Assembly: GCA_965112735.1 (NCBI GenBank)
Contig: OZ218953.1
Span: forward strand, 186,001-250,000
Length of the DNA: 64,000 nucleotides
DNA from: Phaeosaccion multiseriatum
Lineage: Eukaryota; Protista; Ochrophyta, other classes
Direction: 5' to 3'
Below, piece after piece: positions 1 to 14,924 of this stretch. The translations under genes were made by a program, and so were the position numbers. Under the pieces are notes generated by a model. The model worked only from the letters and a program-made list of their open reading frames with translations. It made no database searches and was not told the origin of the DNA. How positions within the stretch are numbered: position 1 is the first letter of the stretch; the number at the start of each line of letters is the position of its first letter.

Positions 1-76
1 CTCCCATGTCTCCCACCTCTTCCTCGTCTCTGTTCCGCGAGAAACAAAGTTCCGTTGCTGCGCTGCTGAACAGGCT
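1..76 (-). mobile_element. Left (A) end of split-direct-repeat element, inverted, running off the window edge
   Basis: Exact reverse complement of 3661-3736 / 5031-5106 (AGCCTGTTCAGCAGCG...). It joins the satellite at the element's terminal base. Confidence 0.8.
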
Positions 77-2360
77 GTGTTGGGTCGAGCGAAGGGCGAG
101 ATTGGGCCTTTCGAGCCCAACCCATGCCCTGTTTGGCGCCATTCCAGCTAGCAAGTGTCTGGCTCGGGCGATTCGTGCTCGACCCATGCCCGATGTAGGC
201 ACTTCGTGGCCAGCAAATGCCTCGTTTCGGATGCTTGTGCCCTTCAAAGGCCCGCTTGGGGCGTGTTGGGTCGAGCGAAGAGCAAGATTGGGCCTATGTC
301 CTGTTTGGCGTCATTCCAGCTAGCAAGTGTCTGGCTCGGGCGATTCGTGCTCGACCCATGCCCGACGTAGGCACTTCGTGGCCAGCAAATGCCTCGTTTC
401 GGATGCTTGTGCCCTTCAAAGGCCCGCTTGGGGCGTGTTGGGTCGAGCGAAGGGCAAGATTGGGCCTTTCGAGCCCAGCCCATGCCCTGTTTGGCGTCAT
501 TCCAGCTAGCAAGTGTCTGGCTCGGGCGATTCGTGCTCGACCCATGCCCGATGTGGGCACTTCGTGGCCAGCAAATGCCTCGTTTCGGCTGCTTGTGCCC
601 TTCAAAGGCCCGCTTGGGGCGTGTTGGGTCGAGCGAAGGGCGAGATTGGGCCTTTCGAGCCCAGTCCATGCCCTGTTTGTCGCCATTCCATCTAGCAAGT
701 GTCTGGCTCGGGCGATTCGTGCTCGACCCATGCCCGACGTAGGCACTTCGTGGCCAGCAAATGCCTCGTTTCGGATGCTTGTGCCCTTCAAAGGCCCGCT
801 TGGCTGCGTGTTGGGTCGAGCGAAGGGCAAGATTGGGCCTTTCGAGCCCAGCCCATGCCCTGTTTGGCGTCATTCCAGCTAGCAAGTGTCTGGCTCGGGC
901 GATTCGTGCTCGACCCATGCCCGATGTGGGCACTTCGTGGCCAGCAAATGCCTCGTTTCGGCTGCTTGTGCCCTTCAAAGGCCCGCTTGGGGCGTGTTGG
1001 GTCGAGCGAAGGGCGAGATTGGGCCTTTCGAGCCCAACCCATGCCCTGTTTGGCGCCATTCCAGCTAGCAAGTGTCTGGCTCGGGCGATTCGTGCTCGAC
1101 CCATGCCCGATGTAGGCACTTCGTGGCCAGCAAATGCCTCGTTTCGGATGCTTGTGCCCTTCCAAGGCCCGCTTGGGGCGTGTTGGGTCGAGCGAAGAGC
1201 AAGATTGGGCCTATGTCCTGTTTGGCGTCATTCCAGCTAGCAAGTGTCTGAGTTGGGCCTTTCGTGCTCGACCCATGCCCGATGTAGGCACTTCGTGGCC
1301 AGCAAATGCCTCGTTTCGGATGCTTGTGCCCTTCCAAGGCCCGCTTGGGGGGCGTGTTGGCTGGGTCGAGCGAAGGGCGAGATTGGGCCTTTCGAGCCCA
1401 GTCCATGCCCTGTTTGGCGCCATTCCAGCTAGCAAGTGTCTGGCTCGGGCGATTCGTGCTCGACCCATGCCTGATGTGGGCACTTCGTGGCCAGCAAATG
1501 CCTCGTTTCGGATGCTTGTGCCCTTCCAAGGCCCGCTTGGGGCGTGTTGGGTCGAGCGAAGAGCAAGATTGGGCCTTTTGAGCCCAGTCCATGCCCTGTT
1601 TGGCGCCATTCCAGCTAGCAAGTGTCTGGCTCGGGCGATTCGTGCTCGACCCATGCCCGATGTGGGCACTTCGTGGCCAGCAAATGCCTCGTTTCGGATG
1701 CTTGTGCCCTTCCAAGGCCCGCTTGGGGCGTGTTGGGTCGAGCGAAGAGCAAGATTGGGCCTTTTGAGCCCAGTCCATGCCCTGTTTGGCGTCATTCCAG
1801 CTAGCAAGTGTCTGAGTTGGGCCTTTCGTGCTCGACCCATGCCCGATGTAGGCACTTCGTGGCCAGCAAATGCCTCGTTTCGGATGCTTGTGCCCTTCAA
1901 ATGCCCGTTTGGGGGGCGTGTTGGCTGGGTCGAGCGAAGGGCGAGATTGGGCCTTTCGAGCCCAGTCCATGCCGTGTTTGGCGCCATTCCAGCTAGCAAG
2001 TGTCTGGCTCGGGCGATTCGTGCTCGACCCATGCCCGACGTAGGCACTTCGTGGCCAGCAAATGCCTCGTTTCGGATGCTTGTGCCCTTCCAAGGCCCGC
2101 TTGGGGCGTTTTGGGTCGAGCGAAGAGCAAGATTGGGCCTTTTGAGCCCAGTCCATGCCCTGTTTGGCGCCATTCCAGCTAGCAAGTGTCTGAGTTGGGC
2201 CTTTCGTGCTCGACCCATGCCCCACGTAGGCACTTCGTGGCCAGCAAATGCCTCGTTTCGGCTGCTTGTGCCCTCCAAAGGCCCGCTTGGGGCGTGTTGG
2301 GTCGAGCGAAGAGCAAGATTGGGCCTTTTGAGCCCAGTCCATGCCCTGTTTGGCGCCATT
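77..2360 (+). repeat. 186-bp tandem satellite array (~12 units, with 172- and 192-bp variants)
   Basis: Unit ...TTGGGTCGAGCGAAGGGCRAGATTGGGCCTTTCGAGCCCAG...CCAGCTAGCAAGTGTCT...GCTCGACCCATGCCCG...GGCCAGCAAATGCCTCGTTTCGG... recurs every 186 bp. Confidence 0.97.
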
Positions 2361-4596
2361 GGAGGATGGGAGAGAACAGGGCTTGTGGCTCGCTCTGCTT
2401 GCACGACTTACTTCCGGTAGTATGGATGGACTACCCTCTTGCTATCGTGCTCGGTGGTCGAGGGATTGGTGCCGCCGCGCTTGAGATATCGGACTTGTTC
2501 ATTTTTCGGGCCCGCAGCACCGAGGTGTTTGGCATTCGCTGTATTGCTCAGCTGGTACAGCGGAAGTCCACGGCGGACGGTTGGAATCGCCGCAGAGTGG
2601 TCTTGGTACGGCGTGTGCAGAAGGGTAACTTCTACGAGTTGATGTTCGAAGAGCTTGGAGCGGAAAACATGAGCGCTTCTGTGAGGGCATTTTCGGCTTT
2701 TCTACAGGGGTTGGATATATGGACACTTTTGGATCTGTGATTCCGAAAAGAATCCGAATTTGCTGGTTTGGGCGCGCTTTGCTGCTTCCACCCGCCGTGC
2801 CAGAGGACTGCGCAGTGTATTTCGCTCAGTGGCTCGCCCCCCCCCCAGCACACCATCCCAAGCGAGTGGGGGGTGTGTGATGGTCAGCAGGGGGCGTGCG
2901 AAGGGACCTCTTCAAAGGACACTGAATCTGCCCGTGGCGACACCAGCGGCTCCTCCCTCGCCATCATTCCTCCCCCAGCAGCGGGGAGCGCAGCCCTTGG
3001 CAACAGCACCAGCAGCCCTACACCGGTACACGCGGCGGGTGTTTGTATGTGTGTGTGTACTGGTGTGCGTCTGTGTCTACTGTTGCCCCTGTATGTGTAT
3101 TATTTTGTCTGTGTGCGTATGAATGTTTGTGTATCTTTGTGTTTTGTGTACCGGCCGACTACGATCGGGAGAGTGGGCTCCCGACTAGGCTGGGGCAGGT
3201 GCTGCTGCACCCTCGCAGCGCACCGGTGGGTACTCGGATGGGTGGGGGTGAAGCGGGACTTGGGGTGCTCACTGCGGTGGCACCCCAAGCTCCACTACAT
3301 CCGAAACCCGGTGCCCGCCTCCCTCCATGGAGGCGGCCCCCTTGGAGGCGCTCTGCGCTCCCAAGGTGGGAGTCCCTCACGGGACTGCCCCCCCCTACTA
3401 ATGATGAGTCCTTCCCCCAACGTTAGCTACCCCTGGTCCACGACCTCTCCACCTGCGGAGCAGGTGGCCACTTGGGAGTCCAGCCCTATTCCTCTTGGCC
3501 TCGAACAGCCGGCTACGGCGTGGATGTGGATAGTCCTCAGCTTGCATACTGCGACGCCTTGGAGCGGGAGTCGGACATCTCCCGGGCCCTCGCCTACGAC
3601 TGAAGGGAGGAGGCCTCTCACTGGCTTCCCACCTTCGCCCGAGCGCCGCGACGGCGCGAAAGCCTGTTCAGCAGCGCAGCAACGGAACTTTGTTTCTCGC
3701 GGAACAGAGACGAGGAAGAGGTGGGAGACATGGGAGCCAGCAGGGCGAAGCGTCAGCGTAGGTGCTTGGTACCGCCCCAAGGGGGGGGGTCCCCTCTGGG
3801 GAGATGTACAGTATGTCAGTGAAGCAGGGAATTTAGATTTTTCAGAAGAGGAGAGACCTTGGCGTGTGCTGTCACTTACTGAGGCGCCGGAGACAGAGCC
3901 CAGGAAGAGTGGAGCACACTGTCAAGGAGGAGAGTAGATACTGGTGTGGTGGAAAGCGAGCCTCTTGTCCTGGGCCCGGACAGAGCGCTTGTGTCGGCCA
4001 AGGGGACCCGCCTGGTGTTGAGTACCGGGGTCCTCGTGGGCGAGGGAAGGAGAGATAGGGAGACTGTGTCTGGTGTTGAGTGCCGACAGTGTCCACGGTG
4101 TTGAGTGCCGGAACTCTTCTTTTCTTTCCCACCCACCCACCCTCAGTCTTAGTTTTAGTTTTAGATACTCATACATTATGGGGGTGAAGCGGGACTTGGG
4201 GTGCTCACTGCGGTGGCACCCCAAGCTCCACTACATCCGAAACCCGGTGCCCGCCTCCCTCCATGGAGGCGGCCCCCTTGGAGGCGCTCTGCGCTCCCAA
4301 GGTGGGAGTCCCTCACGGGACTGCCCCCCCCTACTAATGATGAGTCCTTCCCCCAACGTTAGCTACCCCTGGTCCACGACCTCTCCACCTGCGGAGCAGG
4401 TGGCCACTTGGGAGTCCAGCCCTATTCCTCTTGGCCTCGAACAGCCGGCTACGGCGTGGATGTGGATAGTCCTCAGCTTGCATACTGCGACGCCTTGGAG
4501 CGGGAGTCGGACATCTCCCGGGCCCTCGCCTACGACTGAAGGGAGGAGGCCTCTCACTGGCTTCCCACCTTCGCCCGAGCGCCGCGACGGCGCGAA
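2361..4596 (+). mobile_element. 5'-truncated split-direct-repeat element: internal-B1(3243-3660)-A2(3661-4130)-48-bp spacer-B2(4179-4596)
   Basis: 2361-3660 matches ~6912-8211; 3661-4130 matches 5031-5500; 4179-4596 duplicates 3243-3660. The B1-A2-B2 order is the established 3' end of Ngaro/PAT-type elements. Confidence 0.75.
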
Positions 4597-5030
4597 ATGC
4601 CTCGTTTCGGATGCTTGTGCCCTTCCAAGGCCCGCTTGGGGCGTGTAGGGTCGAGCGAAGGGCAAGATTGGGCCTTTCGAGCCCAGTCCATGCCCTGTTT
4701 GGCGCCATTCCAGCTAGCAAGTGTCTGGCTCGGGCGATTCGTGCTCGACCCATGCCCGATGTAGGCACTTCGTGGCCAGCAAATGCCTCGTTTCGGATGC
4801 TTGTGCCCTTCAAATGCCCGCTTGCGTGTTGGGTCGAGCGAAGGGCAAGATTGGGCCTTTTGAGCCCAGTCCATGCCCTGTTTGGCGCCATTCCAGCTAG
4901 CAAGTGTCTGGCTCGGGCGATTCGTGCTCGACCCATGCCTGATGTGGGCACTTCGTGGCCAGCAAATGCCTCGTTTCGGATGCTTGTGCCCTTCCAAGGC
5001 CCGCTTGGGGCGTGTTGGGTCGAGCGAAGG
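4597..5030 (+). repeat. 186-bp satellite (2 1/3 units)
   Basis: Same unit as 77-2360. Confidence 0.96.
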
Positions 5031-8000
5031 AGCCTGTTCAGCAGCGCAGCAACGGAACTTTGTTTCTCGCGGAACAGAGACGAGGAAGAGGTGGGAGACA
5101 TGGGAGCCAGCAGGGCGAAGCGTCAGCGTAGGTGCTTGGTACCGCCCCAAGGGGGGGGGTCCCCTCTGGGGAGATGTACAGTATGTCAGTGAAGCAGGGA
5201 ATTTAGATTTTTCAGAAGAGGAGAGACCTTGGCGTGCGCTGTCACTTACTGAGGCGGCGGAGACAGAGCCCAGGAAGAGTGGAGCACACTGTCAAGGAGG
5301 AGAGTAGATACTGGTGTGGTGGAAAGCGAGCCTCTTGTCCTGGGCCCGGACAGAGCGCTTGTGTCGGCCAAGGGGACCCGCCTGGTGTTGAGTGCCGGGG
5401 TCCTCGTGGGCGAGGGAAGGAGAGATAGGGAGACTGTGTCTGGTGTTGAGTGCCGACAGTGTCCACGGTGTTGAGTGCCGGAACTCTTCTTTTCTTTCCC
5501 TTTGCCGGTGTTGTGGGGCTCTACGGCTTAGGAGCGGTGTCTGGTGTTGAGTGCCGACCGCCTCCCCGGTGTTGAGTGCCGGCGCCTTTTGCCCTCTTCG
5601 CCCTTTCTTCCTTGCTGGTATCGCCGTAGGATCCGCGTCCGGTGTTGAGGCCGACGCCCTACTCATCTCTCCGCCCTCTCCTCTCTCCCGTGGCCCAAGG
5701 TTTGGGGGGTGTGGTCCACGGCATTTTTTGTCTTTTTACGAGACGAAAGGGGCTCCCGGGTGACGGCAGGCCCCTTAGCTCTTCCAGGTGTTTGTCTGTA
5801 TGTTTGTGTGTGTATGTCCAGACGGTGTTTCTGTGTGTAGGGTGCGTATTTCCTGTGTTTGGCGTGCGAATATGGGCCTCCTCCGCAAAGGAGGCTGGCT
5901 CTGCGCGCGGTGACAACAGCGGCTCATCCCTCGCCATTCCGGCCCTCAACGGCGGGCGGGGCAGTCCTAGGCAACAGCAGCCGTGGTCACTGCCCCTACA
6001 CACGATGTGTGTTTGTATCTGTGTGTGCTGGTCTGCGTCTGTGTGTGCTAGTGTGCGTTTGTGGGTGCTGGTGTCCCTGTATTGTGCCTTTGTCTATATC
6101 TGTGTGCCTGTGAATGTTTGTGTACGTCTGCGTCTTTAAGTGTACCTCCCTTGTTGTTGGAGTGTCTCCCACCTACAACAGCAGTATGGCCAGAAGGAGG
6201 CGTACGTGGTCGCCACTGGGCTTGCCTGCAGTCTCTCTGGATGGGTGGGGGCGTAGCTGACCTTCGATACGGGAGCTCGCACGGCTCACCTCCGGCGGCT
6301 ACATCCGAGAGACATATCGGGCCGAGGAGCGGCGAAGGGAAGGAGACGGACTACAGCTGTACCTCCCTCACCATCTCGAACGCATGGGAGGGGGAGGGGG
6401 GGGGTCCGATGGAGGCTCAGCTCTCAGGACAAACAGCAACCGCAAGGCAGTTAGTACGAGCGTCAAAGGTGGCAGCATGGATGCGAAGGCAGCTATTCGG
6501 GCTGTTGGAAGGAACCGGAGAGCCCTTTGATCGTGGTTGGCGCCTCGAGTTTCCGTGTGGAGCGGATATGGGACCTGTGGCCATAACAGCGAACCGATGG
6601 GCGACAAGAGAGGCACAGCATACGAGGGAGAATTGGGAATTGGAAGGCGGCATTGGGAGTGTACGGTACTCGCATTTCGGGAGGTACGGCAGCGTTTGGT
6701 GACCGTCTACGGAGTGTACGGCGATGTACGTCGTCCGGTGCTGAAGGAAATTGGGGCATTGAGCAATCTGGCTACTTATCTGTAACGGACGGCGGAAGCA
6801 TGATGTTTGGTCGTTCACAACAGCTATGGAGTGGAAGTCGGGGCCTGCCTGTGATGCAGAAGAGAAGGTGATGGTTTTTTCGGCGTTGGGGCTCGTGAGC
6901 GGTGTGAACATGGAGGATGGGAGAGAACAGGGCTTGTGGCTCGCTCTGCTTGCACGACTTACTTCCGGTAGTATGGATGGACTACCCTCTTGCTATCGTG
7001 CTCGGTGGTCGAGGGATTGGTGCCGCCGCGCTTGAGATATTGGACTTGTTCATTTTTCGGGCCCGCAGCACCGAGGTGTTTGGCATTCGTTGTATTGCTC
7101 AGCTGGTACAGCGGAAGTCCGCGGCGGACGGTTGGAATCGCAGCGGAGTGGTCTTGGTACGGCGTGTGCAGAAGGGTAACTTCTACGAGTTGATGTTCGA
7201 AGAGCTTGGAGCGGAAAACATGAGCGCTTCGGTGAGGGCATTTTCGGCTTTTCTACAGGGGTTGGATATATGGACACTTTTGGATCTGTGATTCCGAAAA
7301 GAATCCGAATTTGCCGGTTTGGGCGCGCTTTGCTGCTTCCACCAGCCGTGCCAGAGGACTGCGCAGTGTATTTCGCTCAGTGGCTCGCCCCCCCCCCCGC
7401 ACACCATCCCAAGCGAGTGGGGGGTGTGTGATGGTCAGCAGGGGGCGTGCGAAGGGACCTCTTCAAAGGACACTGACTCTGCCCGTGGCGACACCAGCGG
7501 CTCCTCCCTCGCCATCATTCCTCCCCCAGCAGCGGGGAGCGCAGCCCTTGGCAACAACACCAGCAGCCCTACACCGGTACACGCGGCGGGTGTTTATATG
7601 TGTGTGTGTACTGGTGTGCGTCTGCGTCTACTGTTGCCCCTGTATGTGTATTATTATGTCTGTGTGCGTATGAATGTTTGTGTATCTTTGTGTTTTGTGT
7701 ACCGGCCGACTACGATCGGGAGAGTGGGCTCTCGACTAGGCTGGGGCAGGTGCTGCTGCACCCTCGCAGCGCACCGGTGGGTACTCGGATGGGTGGGGGT
7801 GAAGCGGGACTTGGGGTGCTCACTGCGGTGGCACCCCAAGCTCCACTACATCCGAAACCCGGTGCCCGCCTCCCTCCATGGAGGCGGCCCCCTTGGAGGC
7901 GCTCTGCGCTCCCAAGGTGGGAGTCCCTCACGGGACTGCCCCCCCCTACTAATGATGAGTCCTTCCCCCAACGTTAGCTACCCCTGGTCCACGACCTCTC

Positions 8001-8211
8001 CACCTGCGGAGCAGGTGGCCACCTGGGAGTCCAGCCCTATTCCTCTTGGCCTCGAACAGCCGGCTACGGCGTGGATGTGGATAGCCCTCAGCCTGCATAC
8101 TGCGACGCCTTGGAGCGGGAGTCGGACATCTCCCGGGCCCTCGCCTACGACTGAAGGGAGGAGGCCTCTCACTGGCTCCCCACCTTCGCCCGAGCGCCGT
8201 GACGGCGCGAA
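5031..8211 (+). mobile_element. Split-direct-repeat element copy A1(5031-5500)-internal(5501-7793)-B(7794-8211), inserted without TSD
   Basis: The flanks GAGCGAAGG (to 5030) and GCGAGATTGGG (from 8212) rejoin into an uninterrupted satellite unit. The A and B blocks match those of the first copy. Confidence 0.8.
6400..7291 (+). pseudogene. Possible decayed DIRS-type RT C-terminus/RNase H remnant
   Basis: Frameshifted fragments TARQLV..WMRRQLFGLL, VTDGGSMMFG, VWMDYPLAIVLGGRG and FGIRCIAQLVQRKSAADGWNR occur in the order of DIRS RNase H motifs (TDAS, TDN..A, HIPG..N.ADALSR). Judged by eye only. Confidence 0.4.
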
Positions 8212-8987
8212 GCGAGATTGGGCCTTTCGAGCCCAGTCCATGCCCTGTTTGTCGCCATTCCATCTAGCAAGTGTCTGGCTCGGGCGATTCGTGCTCGACC
8301 CATGCCCGATGTAGGCACTTCGTGGCCAGCAAATGCCTCGTTTCGGATGCTTGTGCCCTTCCAAGGCCCGTTTGGGGCGTGTTGGGTCGAGCGAAGGGCA
8401 AGATTGGGCCTTTTGAGCCCAGTCCATGCCCTGTTTGGCGCCATTCCAGCTAGCAAGTGTCTGGCTCGGGCGATTCGTGCTCGACCTATGCCCGATGTAG
8501 GCACTTCGTGGCCAGCAAATGCCTCGTTTCGGCTGCTTGTGCCCTTCAAATGCCCGCTTGGGGCGTTTTGGGTCGAGCGAAGAGCAAGATTGGGCCTTTT
8601 GAGCCCAGTCCATGCCCTGTTTGGCGCCATTCCAGCTAGCAAGTGTCTGAGTTGGGCCTTTCGTGCTCGACCCATGCCCGACGTGGGCACTTCGTGGCCA
8701 GCAAATGCCTCGTTTCGGATGCTTGTGCCCTTCCAAGGCCCGCTTGGGGCGTGTTGGGTCGAGCGAAGAGCAAGATTGGGCCTTTTGAGCCCAGTCCATG
8801 CCCTGTTTGGCGCCATTCCAGCTAGCAAGTGTCTGAGTTGGGCCTTTCGTGCTCGACCCATGCCCCACGTAGGCACTTCGTGGCCAGCAAATGCCTCGTT
8901 TCGGCTGCTTGTGCCCTCCAAAGGCCCGCTTGGGGCGTGTTGGGTCGAGCGAAGGGCAAGATTGGGCCTTTCGAGCCCAGCCCATGC
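8212..8987 (+). repeat. 186-bp satellite (~4 units)
   Basis: Same unit. Confidence 0.96.
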
Positions 8988-9210
8988 CTCAGTAAGTGAC
9001 AGCGCACGCCAAGGTCTCTCCTCTTCTGAAAAATCTAAATACCCTGCTTCACTGACATACTGTACATCTCCCCAGAGGGGACTTTCCCCCTTGGGGCGGT
9101 ACCAAGCACCTACGCTGACGCTTCGCCCTGCTGGCTCCCATGTCTCCCACCTCTTCCTCGTCTCTGTTCCGCGAGAAACAAAGTTCCGTTGCTGCGCTGC
9201 TGAACAGGCT
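8988..9210 (-). mobile_element. Inverted truncated A end of the element
   Basis: Reverse complement of ~5031-5253 with a few substitutions. Confidence 0.85.
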
Positions 9211-11620
9211 TTCGCTCGACCCAACACGCCCCAAACGGGCCTTGGAAGGGCACAAGCATCCGAAACGAGGCATTTGCTGGCCACGAAGTGCCTACATCGG
9301 GCATGGGTCGAGCACGAATCGCCCGAGCCAGACACTTGCTAGATGGAATGGCGACAAACAGGGCATGGACTGGGCTCGAAAGGCCCAATCTCGCCCTTCG
9401 CTCGACCCAACACGCCCCAAGCGGGCCTTGGAAGGGCACAAGCATCCGAAACGAGGCATTTGCTGGCCACGAAGTGCCCACATCAGGCATGGGTCGAGCA
9501 CGAATCGCCCGAGCCAGACACTTGCTAGCTGGAATGGCGCCAAACAGGGCATGGACTGGGCTCAAAAGGCCCAATCTTGCTCTTCGCTCGACCCAACACG
9601 CCCCAAGCGGGCATTTGAAGGGCACAAGCATCCGAAACGAGGCATTTGCTGGCCACGAAGTGCCTACATCGGGCATGGGTCGAGCACGAATCGCCCGAGC
9701 CAGACACTTGCTAGCTGGAATAGCGCCAAACAGGGCATGGACTGGGCTCGAAAGGCCCAATCTTGCCCTTCGCTCGACCCTACACGCCCCAAGCGGGCCT
9801 TGGAAGGGCACAAGCATCCGAAACGAGGCATTTGCTGGCCACGAAGTGCCTACATCGGGCATGGGTCGAGCACGAATCGCCCGAGCCAGACACTTGCTAG
9901 CTGGAATGGCGCCAAACAGGGCATGGACTGGGCTCGAAAGGCCCAATCTCGCCCTTCGCTCGACCCAGCCAACACGCCCCCCAAACGGGCATTTGAAGGG
10001 CACAAGCATCCGAAACGAGGCATTTGCTGGCCACGAAGTGCCTACATCGGGCATGGGTCGAGCACGAAAGGCCCAACTCAGACACTTGCTAGCTGGAATG
10101 GCGCCAAACAGGGCATGGACTGGGCTCAAAAGGCCCAATCTTGCTCTTCGCTCGACCCAACACGCCCCAAGCGGGCCTTGGAAGGGCACAAGCATCCGAA
10201 ACGAGGCATTCCCTGGCCACGAAGTGCCCACATCGGGCATGGGTCGAGCACGAATCGCCCGAGCCAGACACTTGCTAGCTGGAATGGCGCCAAACAGGGC
10301 ATGGACTGGGCTCAAAAGGCCCAATCTTGCTCTTCGCTCGACCCAACACGCCCCAAGCGGGCCTTGGAAGGGCACAAGCATCCGAAACGAGGCATTTGCT
10401 GGCCACGAAGTGCCCACATCAGGCATGGGTCGAGCACGAATCGCCCGAGCCAGACACTTGCTAGCTGGAATGGCGCCAAACAGGGCATGGACTGGGCTCG
10501 AAAGGCCCAATCTCGCCCTTCGCTCGACCCAGCCAACACGCCCCCCAAACGGGCATTTGAAGGGCACAAGCATCCGAAACGAGGCATTTGCTGGCCACGA
10601 AGTGCCTACATCGGGCATGGGTCGAGCACGAAAGGCCCAACTCAGACACTTGCTAGCTGGAATGACGCCAAACAGGACATAGGCCCAATCTTGCTCTTCG
10701 CTCGACCCAACACGCCCCAAGCGGGCCTTTGAAGGGCACAAGCATCCGAAACGAGGCATTTGCTGGCCACGAAGTGCCTACATCGGGCATGGGTCGAGCA
10801 CGAATCGCCCGAGCCAGACACTTGCTAGCTGGAATGGCGCCAAACAGGGCATGGGTTGGGCTCGAAAGGCCCAATCTCGCCCTTCGCTCGACCCAACACG
10901 CCCCAAGCGGGCCTTTGAAGGGCACAAGCAGCCGAAACGAGGCATTTGCTGGCCACGAAGTGCCCACATCGGGCATGGGTCGAGCACGAATCGCCCGAGC
11001 CAGACACTTGCTAGCTGGAATGACGCCAAACAGGGCATGGGCTGGGCTCGAAAGGCCCAATCTTGCCCTTCGCTCGACCCAACACGCCCCAAGCGGGCCT
11101 TGGAAGGGCACAAGCATCCGAAACGAGGCATTTGCTGGCCACGAAGTGCCTACATCGGGCATGGGTCGAGCACGAAAGGCCCAACTCAGACACTTGCTAG
11201 ATGGAATGGCGACAAACAGGGCATGGACTGGGCTCGAAAGGCCCAATCTTGCCCTTCGCTCGACCCAACACGCCCCAAGCGGGCCTTTCAAGGGCACAAG
11301 CAGCCGAAACGAGGCATTTGCTGGCCACGAAGTGCCTACATCGGGCATGGGTCGAGCACGAATCGCCCGAGCCAGACACTTGCTAGCTGGAATGGCGCCA
11401 AACAGGGCATGGACTGGGCTCGAAAGGCCCAATCTCGCCCTTCGCTCGACCCAACACGCCCCAAGCGGGCATTTGAAGGGCACAAGCATCCGAAACGAGG
11501 CATTTGCTGGCCACGAAGTGCCTACATCGGGCATGGGTCGAGCACGAAAGGCCCAACTCAGACACTTGCTAGCTGGAATGGCGCCAAACAGGGCATGGAC
11601 TGGGCTCGAAAGGCCCAATC
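9211..11620 (-). repeat. 186-bp satellite array in reverse orientation (~13 units)
   Basis: Reverse complement of the unit, with the same 172- and 192-bp variants. Confidence 0.97.
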
Positions 11621-13058
11621 ACGCCCTTTGTCACCCCCCCCCCCCCCCTTGGGGGGGCTCTTGTTGAGAATGTCGTTGAGGAGGGGCCTGCCGCGTGGGG
11701 AGTTAATATGAGGAACTCAAATCCTATGATATATACGGCATGGTTCTCAACTGAGAGGCTTGCTGAGAGCCTCCTAGTGACTGCACGTAGGTTGGTCTCA
11801 TAAGGAAGGTTTGGTGGTATAATAAGCAACTGTCTACACCCACTCTCTCTGTGATAATAGTCTACTCTGACTGCCCTGTCCCTGCCGCCGTGTCTCGGCT
11901 TTGCCCCCATATATGTGCACCTCCCACCCGCCAGTGCACCCTCTCTCCGCGCTGCTTCAGCAGCGAAGCCACGGAACTTCTGTTCTCGCGGAGTGGAGTC
12001 GACGGAGAAACAGGGTATTGAGAGCCGAGGGGAGGTGGAGCTCTCTGATACACATGATGTGCACTTGCATATAATGTGCGTCCCCTCCGCTTATTTCGCC
12101 TACATTATATCTACTCTCCTCCCTGCTCGTGCTCACCACCATCCCTGCTCTCAATCTCCGCCCAATGCCTCGGACATCGCGCCATTCCGCCCCTCTTGGG
12201 TGCCTTGTCTGGCTCGGTGGGAGGTCGCGGACCTCCCCTCACCTTCACATCGCTTTAAAGCTCTTCCATTTCATCGCAGCGAAAGTCCTGCCGGGGAAAT
12301 CATAGGTCGACTCCGTACGGCGCCGTAACTCGTCCCAACTTGCCCGTACTATACCTCCCCTCATGCCTGGGAGTGCCACGTCGGACTGAATAATGGGTGA
12401 GAATAAGGACTTTTCACCATCATCGGTAGAAGTCCTGCGCGCGCTCCGACCCAGCCCTATTCCGGACTTCCTCCCCACCTGATGAAATCCGCATGTCCAC
12501 CCGTGCGTGACATCCTCCCCCAATCAGCGGGGAGTAGTGTAGACACTTCTGCTGTCGATCGCTCTCGTCGCACTCGTTTGCATCGCCTGCTCATTCATTC
12601 TCAAACGTGAACGCAGCTGCATGCGCCGTCCTCGCACACTCCCCACTCGGCTGGCGTGGGTGCAGGAAAGTGAGGGAAAACAGGAAGGGTGTGAGACACG
12701 AGTTGACGCATCAGGAAAAACGGCTCGCCTTGCCCCGCATCCGCCCTCCGCTGCGCTGACCAACGCAACGAGAGAGGCTCCTGACTCTCCACCTTCTGTC
12801 ACGTAGGCATTGAGGCTACTGTTGTGGCCCTCCGCAGCTGCTGGAATACAGGCCAGGCCTTTCTGCTGCGACGCGCTTCAGCTCCTAAAAAGGACATCCG
12901 ATATCATACAGCTACTCCGAGAGCTCCCTGATGCTGCGAGGCAAATGCCCACCGTCCTTGGGGCCTGTCAAGCCCTTTCGGACGTTGCTGTGTAGCTCTG
13001 TAGCTGCTGAGAAAGACGACGGGGTCCTTCAATGGGGAAGAAACGCTTGGTAGCTGTC

Positions 13059-14924
13059 TCAGGTTACGAGGAGGCCGCAGGATAGCTCTGGTCTGCCTTG
13101 TCCGTGCCACAAGAAGCTTGCATGCGCCGCTTCTTGGGCCCTTGCTGCAATGTCGGTGGAAGTGAAGTCAGTACACGCAGAGTCCTCCCCCGCACGCCTT
13201 CGGCGCTCGCAAATAGAGGCCAGGTCAGACTGCAGGCTGGTGTAGACAGCATTCCCCCAGGGCGGGGTGAAAGACGGAGGAAAGCGAAATGCTGCCGGAG
13301 CTTCAAGACTGTCCTCTTTTCCCGTGATCCGCCGTGACATCTCTGTGTTGTCGAGAGAGAGAGAGAGAGGAAGGGGGGGCACATTCATCGAAGGCAGCAC
13401 CAAAAACATCGAGACACCGCCGCACCCATCTAGTCTCTCCTCACCTGTCAGACTAAACATGTAGTGAGAATGTGCCATCATTGCAAGGACGCCTTCGAGA
13501 CATTGGTGTCCAGCTTCCGCGCAGAAGGCCTCGACAGCACTCTTGATGCCACTCCAGTGATCCGAAAAAGCACGAATATGTACCAGAGATCCCATCGAAG
13601 GGACCGCTATGTAATGCTCGGGAGGCTGACCAAGCACCTCAGGCGGAGCACTTGAGGCCTGAGTTGGGAGGGAAGCGTAGAGCCGAGAAGGACGGGGTTG
13701 GGTATTGGATGCTATACGCACTCTGGCAAGACTGTCCATCCCTTAGATTCCGTTGGGGCTGAAGACCGACTCTCGTACCTGACACAGCGCCATGTAGTTC
13801 ACCACCATTGCGACGCGGTGACCTCCCAAAGGATCCAGGAGAGCGAACTCAATGGGGCTGACAAAACCGTTTGCAGACGGACTGAACAGCCACGCTGCGG
13901 CCTGAGTGGAACCAACGCAACCCGTGGCGGCATGGGTAGGGGTCTGCTGCTGCGCTCGAGCAGTTTTAAGACGCTGCTCAGTCTCGGAGAAAGCCTCACG
14001 TGCCAAGTCTCTCGCCTTGGCTTGCGTGCCCGAAGAGCTTCCCGTGAGGGAGTCAAAGCCTTGGGGAGCAATGAGCGCCGGACGCGTCATGGTGTACACG
14101 CCAGGCATGGCGTAAAGGGCGTAGTCTGCGACAGCCACGGGCGCGGCCCTGAGGTCGAAAGTGCCCACAAGCTTCAAGTCACTTGTCAGTCCCCCGGTCA
14201 TACTCATAGCGGGCCACAATCGCTCCAAAAGGTTCATCATACCCCTCCGATGGACAAGCATGGCAACCGTTCCGAGTAAAAGCATCCCATCCGTGTTACA
14301 AGCACATCGCGGAGTCGCCAAATACCCCTCATCCCAATACAGCCGTCTCATTTTGTCCATTTGGCCTTGCGAAAAGATTGTTGCCTCCAGCTGCAGGAGG
14401 CTCCAGTCATCAGGCAGAGAATCCACGGCCCGACCGACGTCACGGGCTCCCAACACATCCAAGGGCGCAAAGCTCGCGTCATCCTCCAAGAGCAAGGCTC
14501 GCTCGTGCCCAGCCTGGGAGGCAAGGAACACTGCCTTCAAGTGGGACAGAGTGCAGGCCAGCTGAGACGCAATAATGCCTCCAAAACTCTCACGATCCCA
14601 TGCCACCACTTGGAGCCCCCCTGATACCCAACGTGAGACACCCGCTTCACCATCGTGCGGCTGCTTCACCAAAGCAGAGCCGTCCACTGCAGTCACCCAT
14701 GTCACCCGATCTGGGCTCACTTCAGCCGCATCCAGTTGCATCTGCATGCGCCGTCGTCTCTCCACACTACGTTCCAAGTTGATTATGTAGATCTGGTCCG
14801 TCACTTCAGGGCTCAACATGGCTTGCACAGAAGGAGAGACAGTCACGTGCGGCGCCTCACCTGCGACGGCATCACGTGCCCCGAAGACTGCTGATGCTGC
14901 CATTACGACGGCAAAAAGCCTCAT
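13059..14924 (-). CDS. Glycosyltransferase family 25 protein with signal peptide and C-terminal extension (probably 3 exons)
   Basis: IYIINLERSVERRRRM, AVDG, ACTLSHLKA and LLLEDDA motifs. Phase-consistent GT-AG introns at ~13659-13777 and ~13345-13444 join it to ORF 13059-13739. Confidence 0.8.

Follow-up and report, generated by a model that had tools for sequence, protein, structure and literature searches.

Ngaro elements, a group of tyrosine-recombinase (YR) retrotransposons, are defined by three features: their direct repeats are split, internal repeats follow the YR gene, and a methyltransferase is absent; PAT/TOC elements combine split direct repeats with a methyltransferase, and DIRS1-like elements have inverted repeats (PMC4157794, PMC8547959). 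The window studied here is a 64,000-nucleotide stretch of the ochrophyte Phaeosaccion multiseriatum (contig OZ218953.1, here C4, positions 186001-250000; the source genome has 67 Mb in 22 contigs, labelled from C1). Near its start lie two copies of a gene-less element that we call N. It is a new example of an already known type, the non-autonomous Ngaro-like YR retrotransposon, and implies no new mechanism.

The autonomous families related to N are here named Y1 and Y2, and the repeats A and B. The closest described systems are the Ngaro elements of two stramenopiles, Cafeteria burkhardae (PMC8547959) and Ectocarpus (PMC12477816). They share with our elements the layout A1-[open reading frames (ORFs)]-B1A2B2, a Gag-like ORF1, a reverse transcriptase (RT)/RNase H ORF2 and a tyrosine recombinase ORF3, with internal repeats after the YR gene and no methyltransferase. 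Modules of A, a 48-bp spacer and B (A-48-B) found in this genome are comparable to the 'solo AB repeats' of Cafeteria Ngaro (PMC8547959). N differs from both described elements in being gene-less. Cafeteria Ngaro matches PF00078 and PF17919, whereas the Y2 RT has diverged too far for Pfam to recognise and has HGDD at motif C; and, unlike Ngaro elements in virophages or dispersed sites, N and Y insertions lie mostly in one satellite block per chromosome.

TOC1 of Chlamydomonas reinhardtii, whose terminal repeats are split, is a further point of reference. It has been described as a non-autonomous DIRS retrotransposon that is active (bioRxiv 10.1101/2022.06.16.496473, citing Day et al. 1988). 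N is likewise a gene-less YR-retrotransposon derivative, presumably mobilised in trans. In the PAT/DIRS group, to which TOC elements belong, autonomous members have a methyltransferase domain (PMC4157794); N differs from TOC1 in having a partner without a methyltransferase, in its host lineage and in its satellite confinement.

In Dictyostelium discoideum the YR retrotransposon DIRS-1 is found exclusively in centromeric heterochromatin; it tends to insert into copies already present, and needs an internal copy of its end-to-end junction to restore its ends (PMC7192593). N appears to share the latter two traits and is itself found in putatively centromeric satellite, but the terminal repeats of DIRS-1 are inverted and it carries an internal complementary region and a methyltransferase, where the N/Y2 pair has direct split repeats and no methyltransferase. 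Cryptons (PMC3212892) resemble N and the Y families in their tyrosine recombinase, the lack of a staggered-cut target duplication and a presumed circular intermediate; they are, however, DNA transposons without RT/RNase H and without the A1...B1A2B2 repeats.

The genome thereby gains curated entries for two partnered elements, one an autonomous Ngaro-like retrotransposon and the other non-autonomous, both of which standard annotation would miss because Pfam is blind to the RT of the first and the second has no genes. Young copies (up to 100% identical) and duplication-free insertions suit the pair to the study of target choice by a retrotransposon-borne tyrosine recombinase, a question also posed by DIRS-1. 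Of secondary interest are the Pfam-invisible HGDD RT and the confinement to satellite that is putatively centromeric.

Structure of N in the window

Self-comparison of window positions 1-14000 (self-BLAST and a repeat search), a dot-plot-type check suggested by a preliminary description of this DNA, reproduced base for base the two repeats given there. Repeat A (470 bp) appears as the match of 3656-4130 with 5024-5500 (99.0%). Repeat B (418 bp) appears as that of 3243-3668 with 4179-4606 (99.5%) and again as 4179-4596 with 7794-8211 (98.8%); it is the tail of a 1301-bp shared stretch, 2360-3660 and 6911-8211 (98.5%). Copy 1 (2360-4596) reads interior-B1-A2-48 bp-B2 and is missing its 5' 1880 bp; copy 2 (5031-8211) reads A1-2293 bp-B1, with satellite next. 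We call the 3181-bp segment A1-interior-B1 the unit. The parts are as follows.

2360-3242, plus strand: copy 1 interior, 3' part (unit positions 1881-2763), 5'-truncated against satellite
3243-3660, plus strand: copy 1 B1, 418 bp, 0 differences between B1 and B2
3661-4130, plus strand: copy 1 A2, 470 bp; the B1/A2 join is the join of the element ends
4131-4178, plus strand: 48-bp A2-B2 spacer, with nt 1-40 identical to the Y2 spacer
4179-4596, plus strand: copy 1 B2, 418 bp; element 3' end ...GGCGCGAA
5031-5500, plus strand: copy 2 A1, 470 bp; 5' end AGCCTGTTCAGC...
5501-7793, plus strand: copy 2 interior, 2293 bp, without recognisable coding capacity
7794-8211, plus strand: copy 2 B1, 418 bp; satellite directly after, A2-48-B2 absent

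The junction GGCGCGAA/AGCCTG joins the two ends of the element, as the preliminary description had it, but position 2361, where the stretch given there starts, is no element end; it is the point at which copy 1 is truncated. Loss of A2 from copy 2 had been ascribed, as probable, to recombination between B1 and B2. This is plausible, and 100%-identical sisters on C1 and C5 retain A2; there is no scar, however, and the event is inseparable from a unit-length insertion, so that copy 2 may plausibly reflect either B1/B2 recombination or integration of a unit-length form.

An Rfam search of the window gave no match, and the RNA fold of the GGTGTTGAGTGCC repeat region (5370-5655) was no better than that of shuffled sequences (z = -0.43).

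Copies elsewhere in the genome

A search of the organism's own genome found at least 18 full copies of the 3181-bp unit, at 96-100% identity and with differing flanks, on at least 10 contigs; many continue straight into A-48 bp-B. Mapping of the parts on 30 loci placed complete A1...B1-A2-48-B2 copies on C5, C10, C12, C15 (two) and C4 (two). The 4117-bp element A1-2293 bp-B1-A2-48 bp-B2, at first only a reconstruction, therefore stands intact at six or more other loci, and the predicted split direct repeats A1...B1A2B2 are present in at least seven copies. Five complete 4.1-kb copies are located at:

C5:2544997-2549112
C15:2005678-2009792
C10:749343-753442
C4:172330-176429
C12:1654241-1658357

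A 160-nt sequence spanning the B/A junction is found at 18 loci with at least 98% identity. With this junction and full copies at many loci, misassembly of the window alone is not the explanation. In public runs compared with window 2361-8211, an independent sample of this organism also contains N at high depth, and a second organism from the same study contains parts of it at 95-99% identity, so that the N family is common to close relatives.

Within a copy, A1 differs from A2 and B1 from B2 by 0-2 nt in six of the seven complete copies, against 14-22 nt between subfamilies; A2-48-B2 is thus inherited with its own unit. The exception, C4:177126-182160, has a unit identical to window copy 2 followed by two A-48-B modules of the other subfamily, an arrangement that points to insertion beside, or recombination with, resident copies. 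This unit-A48B-A48B array is one of several variants: C12 has unit-unit-A48B; other loci have a second unit behind the first, cut at position 10, 375, 440 or 910; and three units end at B1 with nothing of the element behind.

Ends and target sites

All 25 independent insertions with a 5' end begin AGCCTGTTCAGC, and all 11 3' ends finish GGCGCGAA, one of them as CGCGCGAA. The absence of a target-site duplication, claimed from the window, is borne out by two insertions that break the satellite consensus exactly, with flanks that rejoin without duplication or loss: window copy 2 (gagcgaagg-N-gcgagattggg) and the copy at C4:172330 (catccgaaac-N-gaggcat), the flanks forming continuous satellite in both cases.

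Immediately left of the element, 9 of 25 insertions have the triplet AAA, and AA occurs within these three bases in 17. Going by these flanks, sites whose left side ends in AA(A) are preferred, and this side resembles the element's own 3' end, ...GCGAA. This likeness fits a proposal that PMC7192593 cites for DIRS elements, namely that the target is defined by a short stretch at the junction of the circle. At one locus on C15 (L018, on the 2031146 side) a full A1 is immediately preceded by a 23-nt partial A start (AGCCTGTTCAGCAGCGCAGCAAC), which resembles an end that was aborted or nested.

The autonomous partner

A partner with RT/RNase H and tyrosine recombinase genes had been expected, and the genome search found one, Y2, with the same repeat layout. 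The Pfam tyrosine-recombinase model has 15 matches in the genome, all within the per-contig clusters of N; and junction-like matches (85-87%) lie 0.4-0.6 kb downstream of four 390-amino acid (aa) YR ORFs, on C8, C10, C15 and C7. Y2 is a 6.9-kb family in the same satellite blocks as N, with the order A1-ORF1-RT/RNase H ORF-YR ORF-B1-A2-spacer-B2, then satellite. Our reference copy (L044, C8:1191800-1198800, minus strand) belongs to a locus that begins inside A1. Its parts are listed below; coordinates marked rc are on the reverse complement of L044.

ORF1: 612 aa
ORF2, RT/RNase H, 790 aa: L044:2508-4877, minus strand
ORF3, YR, 390 aa: 4311-5480 (rc), PF00589 at 31.2 bits (cut-off 27.1)
B1, 406 bp: 5487-5892 (rc)
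A2, 457 bp: 5889-6345 (rc)
Spacer, 52 bp: between A2 and B2
B2, 406 bp: 6398-6802 (rc), satellite next

The ends, spacer and 5' leader of N are 73-100% identical to those of Y2. The 3' part of A is 92-93% identical, 260 nt over the end of A1 and the leader 93%, and the spacer 40/40 nt; window 3581-4357 (end of B1, A2, spacer and start of B2) is collinear with Y2, at 80% over 791 nt. Since no N ORF contains a Pfam domain and an autonomous partner with homologous ends exists, N can be called non-autonomous, as first proposed.

Y2 encodes the RT, RNase H and tyrosine recombinase that characterize a YR retrotransposon, of which N encodes none, and its B1, A2 and B2 follow ORF3, the internal repeats lying downstream of the YR gene as in Ngaro. 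ORF2 stops about 70 aa after the RNase H motif DDLSR, and the YR ORF overlaps its end; no Pfam domain lies between RNase H and YR, the absence of a methyltransferase being judged by the available room. The pair is therefore Ngaro-like by its structure, rather than PAT/TOC-like. Of the original label, Ngaro/PAT/TOC-like, the YR retrotransposon with split direct repeats stands, and the PAT/TOC part falls for want of room for a methyltransferase in Y2. Other classes were rejected as well: DIRS1-like, since there are no inverted terminal repeats and all N and Y2 repeats are direct; Crypton, since RT/RNase H ORFs are intact and under purifying selection in the partner families; and derivatives of long terminal repeat (LTR) elements (TRIM/LARD), since no B stands 5' of A1 and there is no 4-6 bp duplication.

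Y1 and the reverse transcriptase

The second autonomous family, Y1, was met as a short 3.4-kb copy (L041:3050-6425, C1:5463098-5466473) with a YR ORF (PF00589, 30 bits; R..HxxR..Y residues in the translation) but no RT. This short form is a deletion derivative: longer copies on C7 and C12 hold an extra 2947 bp between the 5' repeat and position 20. The extra bases (L042, L043) contain a 697-aa ORF without known domains and an open frame, 658 codons or longer, that encodes RT motifs A, B and C together with RNase H (L043:1-1974).

In Y2 ORF2, aligned with relatives, motif A is SKTDVSSAF, motif B FGPCSSP and motif C HGDD, and the RNase H reads DGDA..E..RGDN..DDLSR. The RTs of Y1 and Y2 both have HGDD at motif C and an insert of about 28 aa between motifs B and C; presence in both families indicates that the odd motif is conserved rather than decayed. 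The two pol ORFs are 62% identical. Compared between the two families, pol, YR and ORF1 have ratios of non-synonymous to synonymous substitution rates (dN/dS) of 0.21, 0.16 and 0.43, respectively. The first two values indicate purifying selection on RT/RNase H and YR.

A homologous-protein search with YR and with pol returned none, and a PDB sequence search with YR gave no match. An exhaustive HMMER search with YR found 1792 relatives at about 30% identity, some of them long proteins whose upstream parts align with the Y1 RT ORF. These have YVDD or YLDD, and in one of them a weak RVT_1 match coincides exactly with the aligned segment. These relatives include metagenome proteins and two oomycete proteins, the nearest named ones being unannotated, from Saprolegnia and Phytophthora. 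The nearest named ESM Atlas clusters of ORF2 are RVT_1 (score 0.96), and the top 50 Foldseek hits are all retroviral RTs, at a weak E of about 2e-3 (poor AF2 model, 6-row alignment). Y2 ORF2 is an RT, as established by motif alignment and selection, and weakly by fold.

Of the Y1 coding region, the short derivative retains RNase H and YR, without ORF1 or the RT N-terminal part. Several of its copies are 99-100% identical, including C2:3732379-3735523 and two more on C2, which suggests mobilisation in trans for this derivative as well. In the C1 copy (L041), A1' (the Y1 5' repeat being A') and the last 81 nt of B2' are missing too, and RNase H has a frameshift relative to the C7 copy.

Proposed mechanism and alternatives

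We consider it very probable that both copies in this region belong to a non-autonomous Ngaro-like YR retrotransposon mobilised by Y2 enzymes. The structure, the dispersed and near-identical young copies, the clean insertions, the selection on partner genes and the shared cis sequences are direct observations; from them we infer an RNA step, a circle and mobilisation in trans. Of Y2, N retains the cis parts alone: the A repeat, the leader behind A1, the B end, the spacer and the B/A junction. Its RNA would be transcribed from within A1 to B2 and reverse transcribed by the Y2 RT/RNase H, with the internal B1/A2 junction serving as the template that restores and joins both ends. The resulting circular N DNA would be inserted by the Y2 tyrosine recombinase through conservative recombination, and such insertion of a circle would give exact ends and no target duplication.

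Several observations weigh against this scheme. The unit-unit tandems, the unit followed by a truncated unit, the subfamily-mixed array and the units without A2-B2 are also derivable without reverse transcription, being expected as well from DNA-level recombinase activity or unequal crossing-over. No public RNA run carries the element. Motif C, HGDD, departs from the usual Y/F-x-DD, Pfam RVT_1 does not recognise the Y1/Y2 RT (whole-genome RT scans therefore miss these elements), a PDB sequence search with pol and a pol profile gave no match, and the AF2 model of the RT is poor (pLDDT 46). Finally, public short contigs (Logan) bridge no junction, the best over B1/A2 having 30 nt on one side, one short of the bridging rule; the assembly is the sole source of long-range order in this window.

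The main rival is Crypton-like movement at the DNA level, in which the recombinase would excise a circle at B/A and reinsert it, A-48-B being a small deletion derivative that stacks head-to-tail. It would explain why units without A2-B2 are exact insertions, and why tandems occur (unit-unit-A48B, unit-A48B-A48B), one array mixing subfamilies. Among the loci examined, however, A-48-B always has a unit 5' of it, and A2 and B2 match their own unit to 0-2 nt in six of seven copies, as expected if A1...B2 is copied whole. The short Y1 form, multiplied to several 100%-identical copies despite lacking ORF1 and the N-terminal RT, also fits DNA-only movement, as does a whole-genome RVT_1 scan that shows no RT beside any YR gene; but that blank is a false negative, and the partners encode intact RT/RNase H under purifying selection. 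We rate this rival as improbable. A Crypton reading of L041, with its YR and no RVT_1 nearby, was dropped once longer copies on C7 and C8 showed intact RT/RNase H ORFs.

That N is not mobile at all, its copies being products of segmental duplication, of unequal crossing-over in satellite or of assembly, is very unlikely. The window does lie in a satellite region with an inverted duplication (arms 806-2360 and 9533-11087, 98%), three C14 copies have one common flank, like a segmental duplication, and public contigs are too short for long-range order. Against this stand identical ends with about 25 different flanks, on at least 10 contigs whose satellites are only 66-71% alike, together with the high depth in the independent sample and the presence in a second organism.

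Least credible of all is a non-autonomous LTR-type element (TRIM/LARD) whose LTR would be B+A with the 5' LTR truncated: B1-A2-spacer-B2 is superficially like tandem LTR material and Gypsy chromoviruses occur in the same blocks, but none of 25 copies has B before A1, all begin at A position 1, there is no target duplication, and the family with the ends of N encodes a tyrosine recombinase, not a DDE integrase.

Satellite blocks and candidate centromeres

The target DNA of the window is a 186-bp satellite whose matches with at least 87% identity lie exclusively in C4:164.9-197.6 kb. Around and between the two N copies the window contains:

1-76, minus strand: A1 positions 1-76 of an adjacent complete unit (C4:182896-186076) that crosses the window start, 100% match
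77-2359, plus strand: 186-bp satellite array, the target DNA
4597-5030, plus strand: satellite, about 2.3 monomers, between copies 1 and 2
8212-8985, plus strand: satellite resuming the sequence broken at 5030/5031, with no duplication or loss
8986-9210, minus strand: isolated fragment A[1-225], reversed, at the satellite orientation switch
9211-11628, minus strand: inverted satellite, end of the ~33-kb block C4:164.9-197.6 kb
11950-12035, plus strand: ~86-nt fragment of the Y1 5' repeat (A'), at the satellite block edge

Relatives of this satellite at 66-71% form single blocks on C6 (2.34-2.40 Mb, L019), C8, C10 and C15. The C1 satellite is a 165/166-bp variant (C1:5.46 Mb, L041), and monomers of about 177 bp occur too. 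Each large contig has its own variant, mostly in one block of tens of kb. Matches to N, Y1 and Y2 likewise fall mainly in one region per contig, from C1 to C16, at varied internal positions; C3 and C14 each have a second, smaller N/Y site.

The blocks of satellite and N/Y elements look like regional centromeres and are candidates for them on their sequence organization. The elements thus mark one satellite block, a candidate centromere, on each of 16 contigs. It is possible, though we hold this only tentatively, that Y1, Y2 and N are centromere-specific and target one block per chromosome, despite differing satellites, by chromatin or resident element ends rather than by DNA sequence; such targeting is suggested because the satellites (186-, 177- and 165-bp) are only 66-71% alike between chromosomes. 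If true, these elements would parallel the chromodomain-guided centromeric Gypsy elements, with a recombinase as their basis and an RT lineage of unusual HGDD active site.

Within the window, the inverted arms 806-2360 and 9533-11087 comprise about 1.5 kb of satellite. The satellite flips orientation exactly at the reversed A[1-225] fragment (8986-9210), and from its position this switch looks like an inversion breakpoint at an element end. The Y1 5'-repeat fragment at 11950-12035 (95-96% identity) lies about 320 bp past the last satellite monomer.

Interior of N and neighbouring elements

By tblastx, matches of N to Y2 are confined to the terminal regions, and no decayed coding remnant of Y2 genes was found. 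The first ~225 nt of the copy 2 interior are homologous to the Y2 leader. Further in, window 6420-7376 (957 bp, 88%) matches, in opposite orientation, an element of about 3 kb; since these 957 bp are common to both, the N interior is partly captured or shared DNA. The 88% matches were followed as a lead to the partner and rejected, as they belong to this unrelated terminal-repeat element.

The ~3-kb element has 215-bp terminal direct repeats (L038:1430-4455, C3:92429-95454) and occurs also on C10, C11 and C16. A Gypsy chromovirus adjoins one of the 88% matches, and the same repeat cluster contains an intact 1728-aa Gypsy polyprotein with a C-terminal chromodomain (L033:1316-6499, C3:86315-91498).

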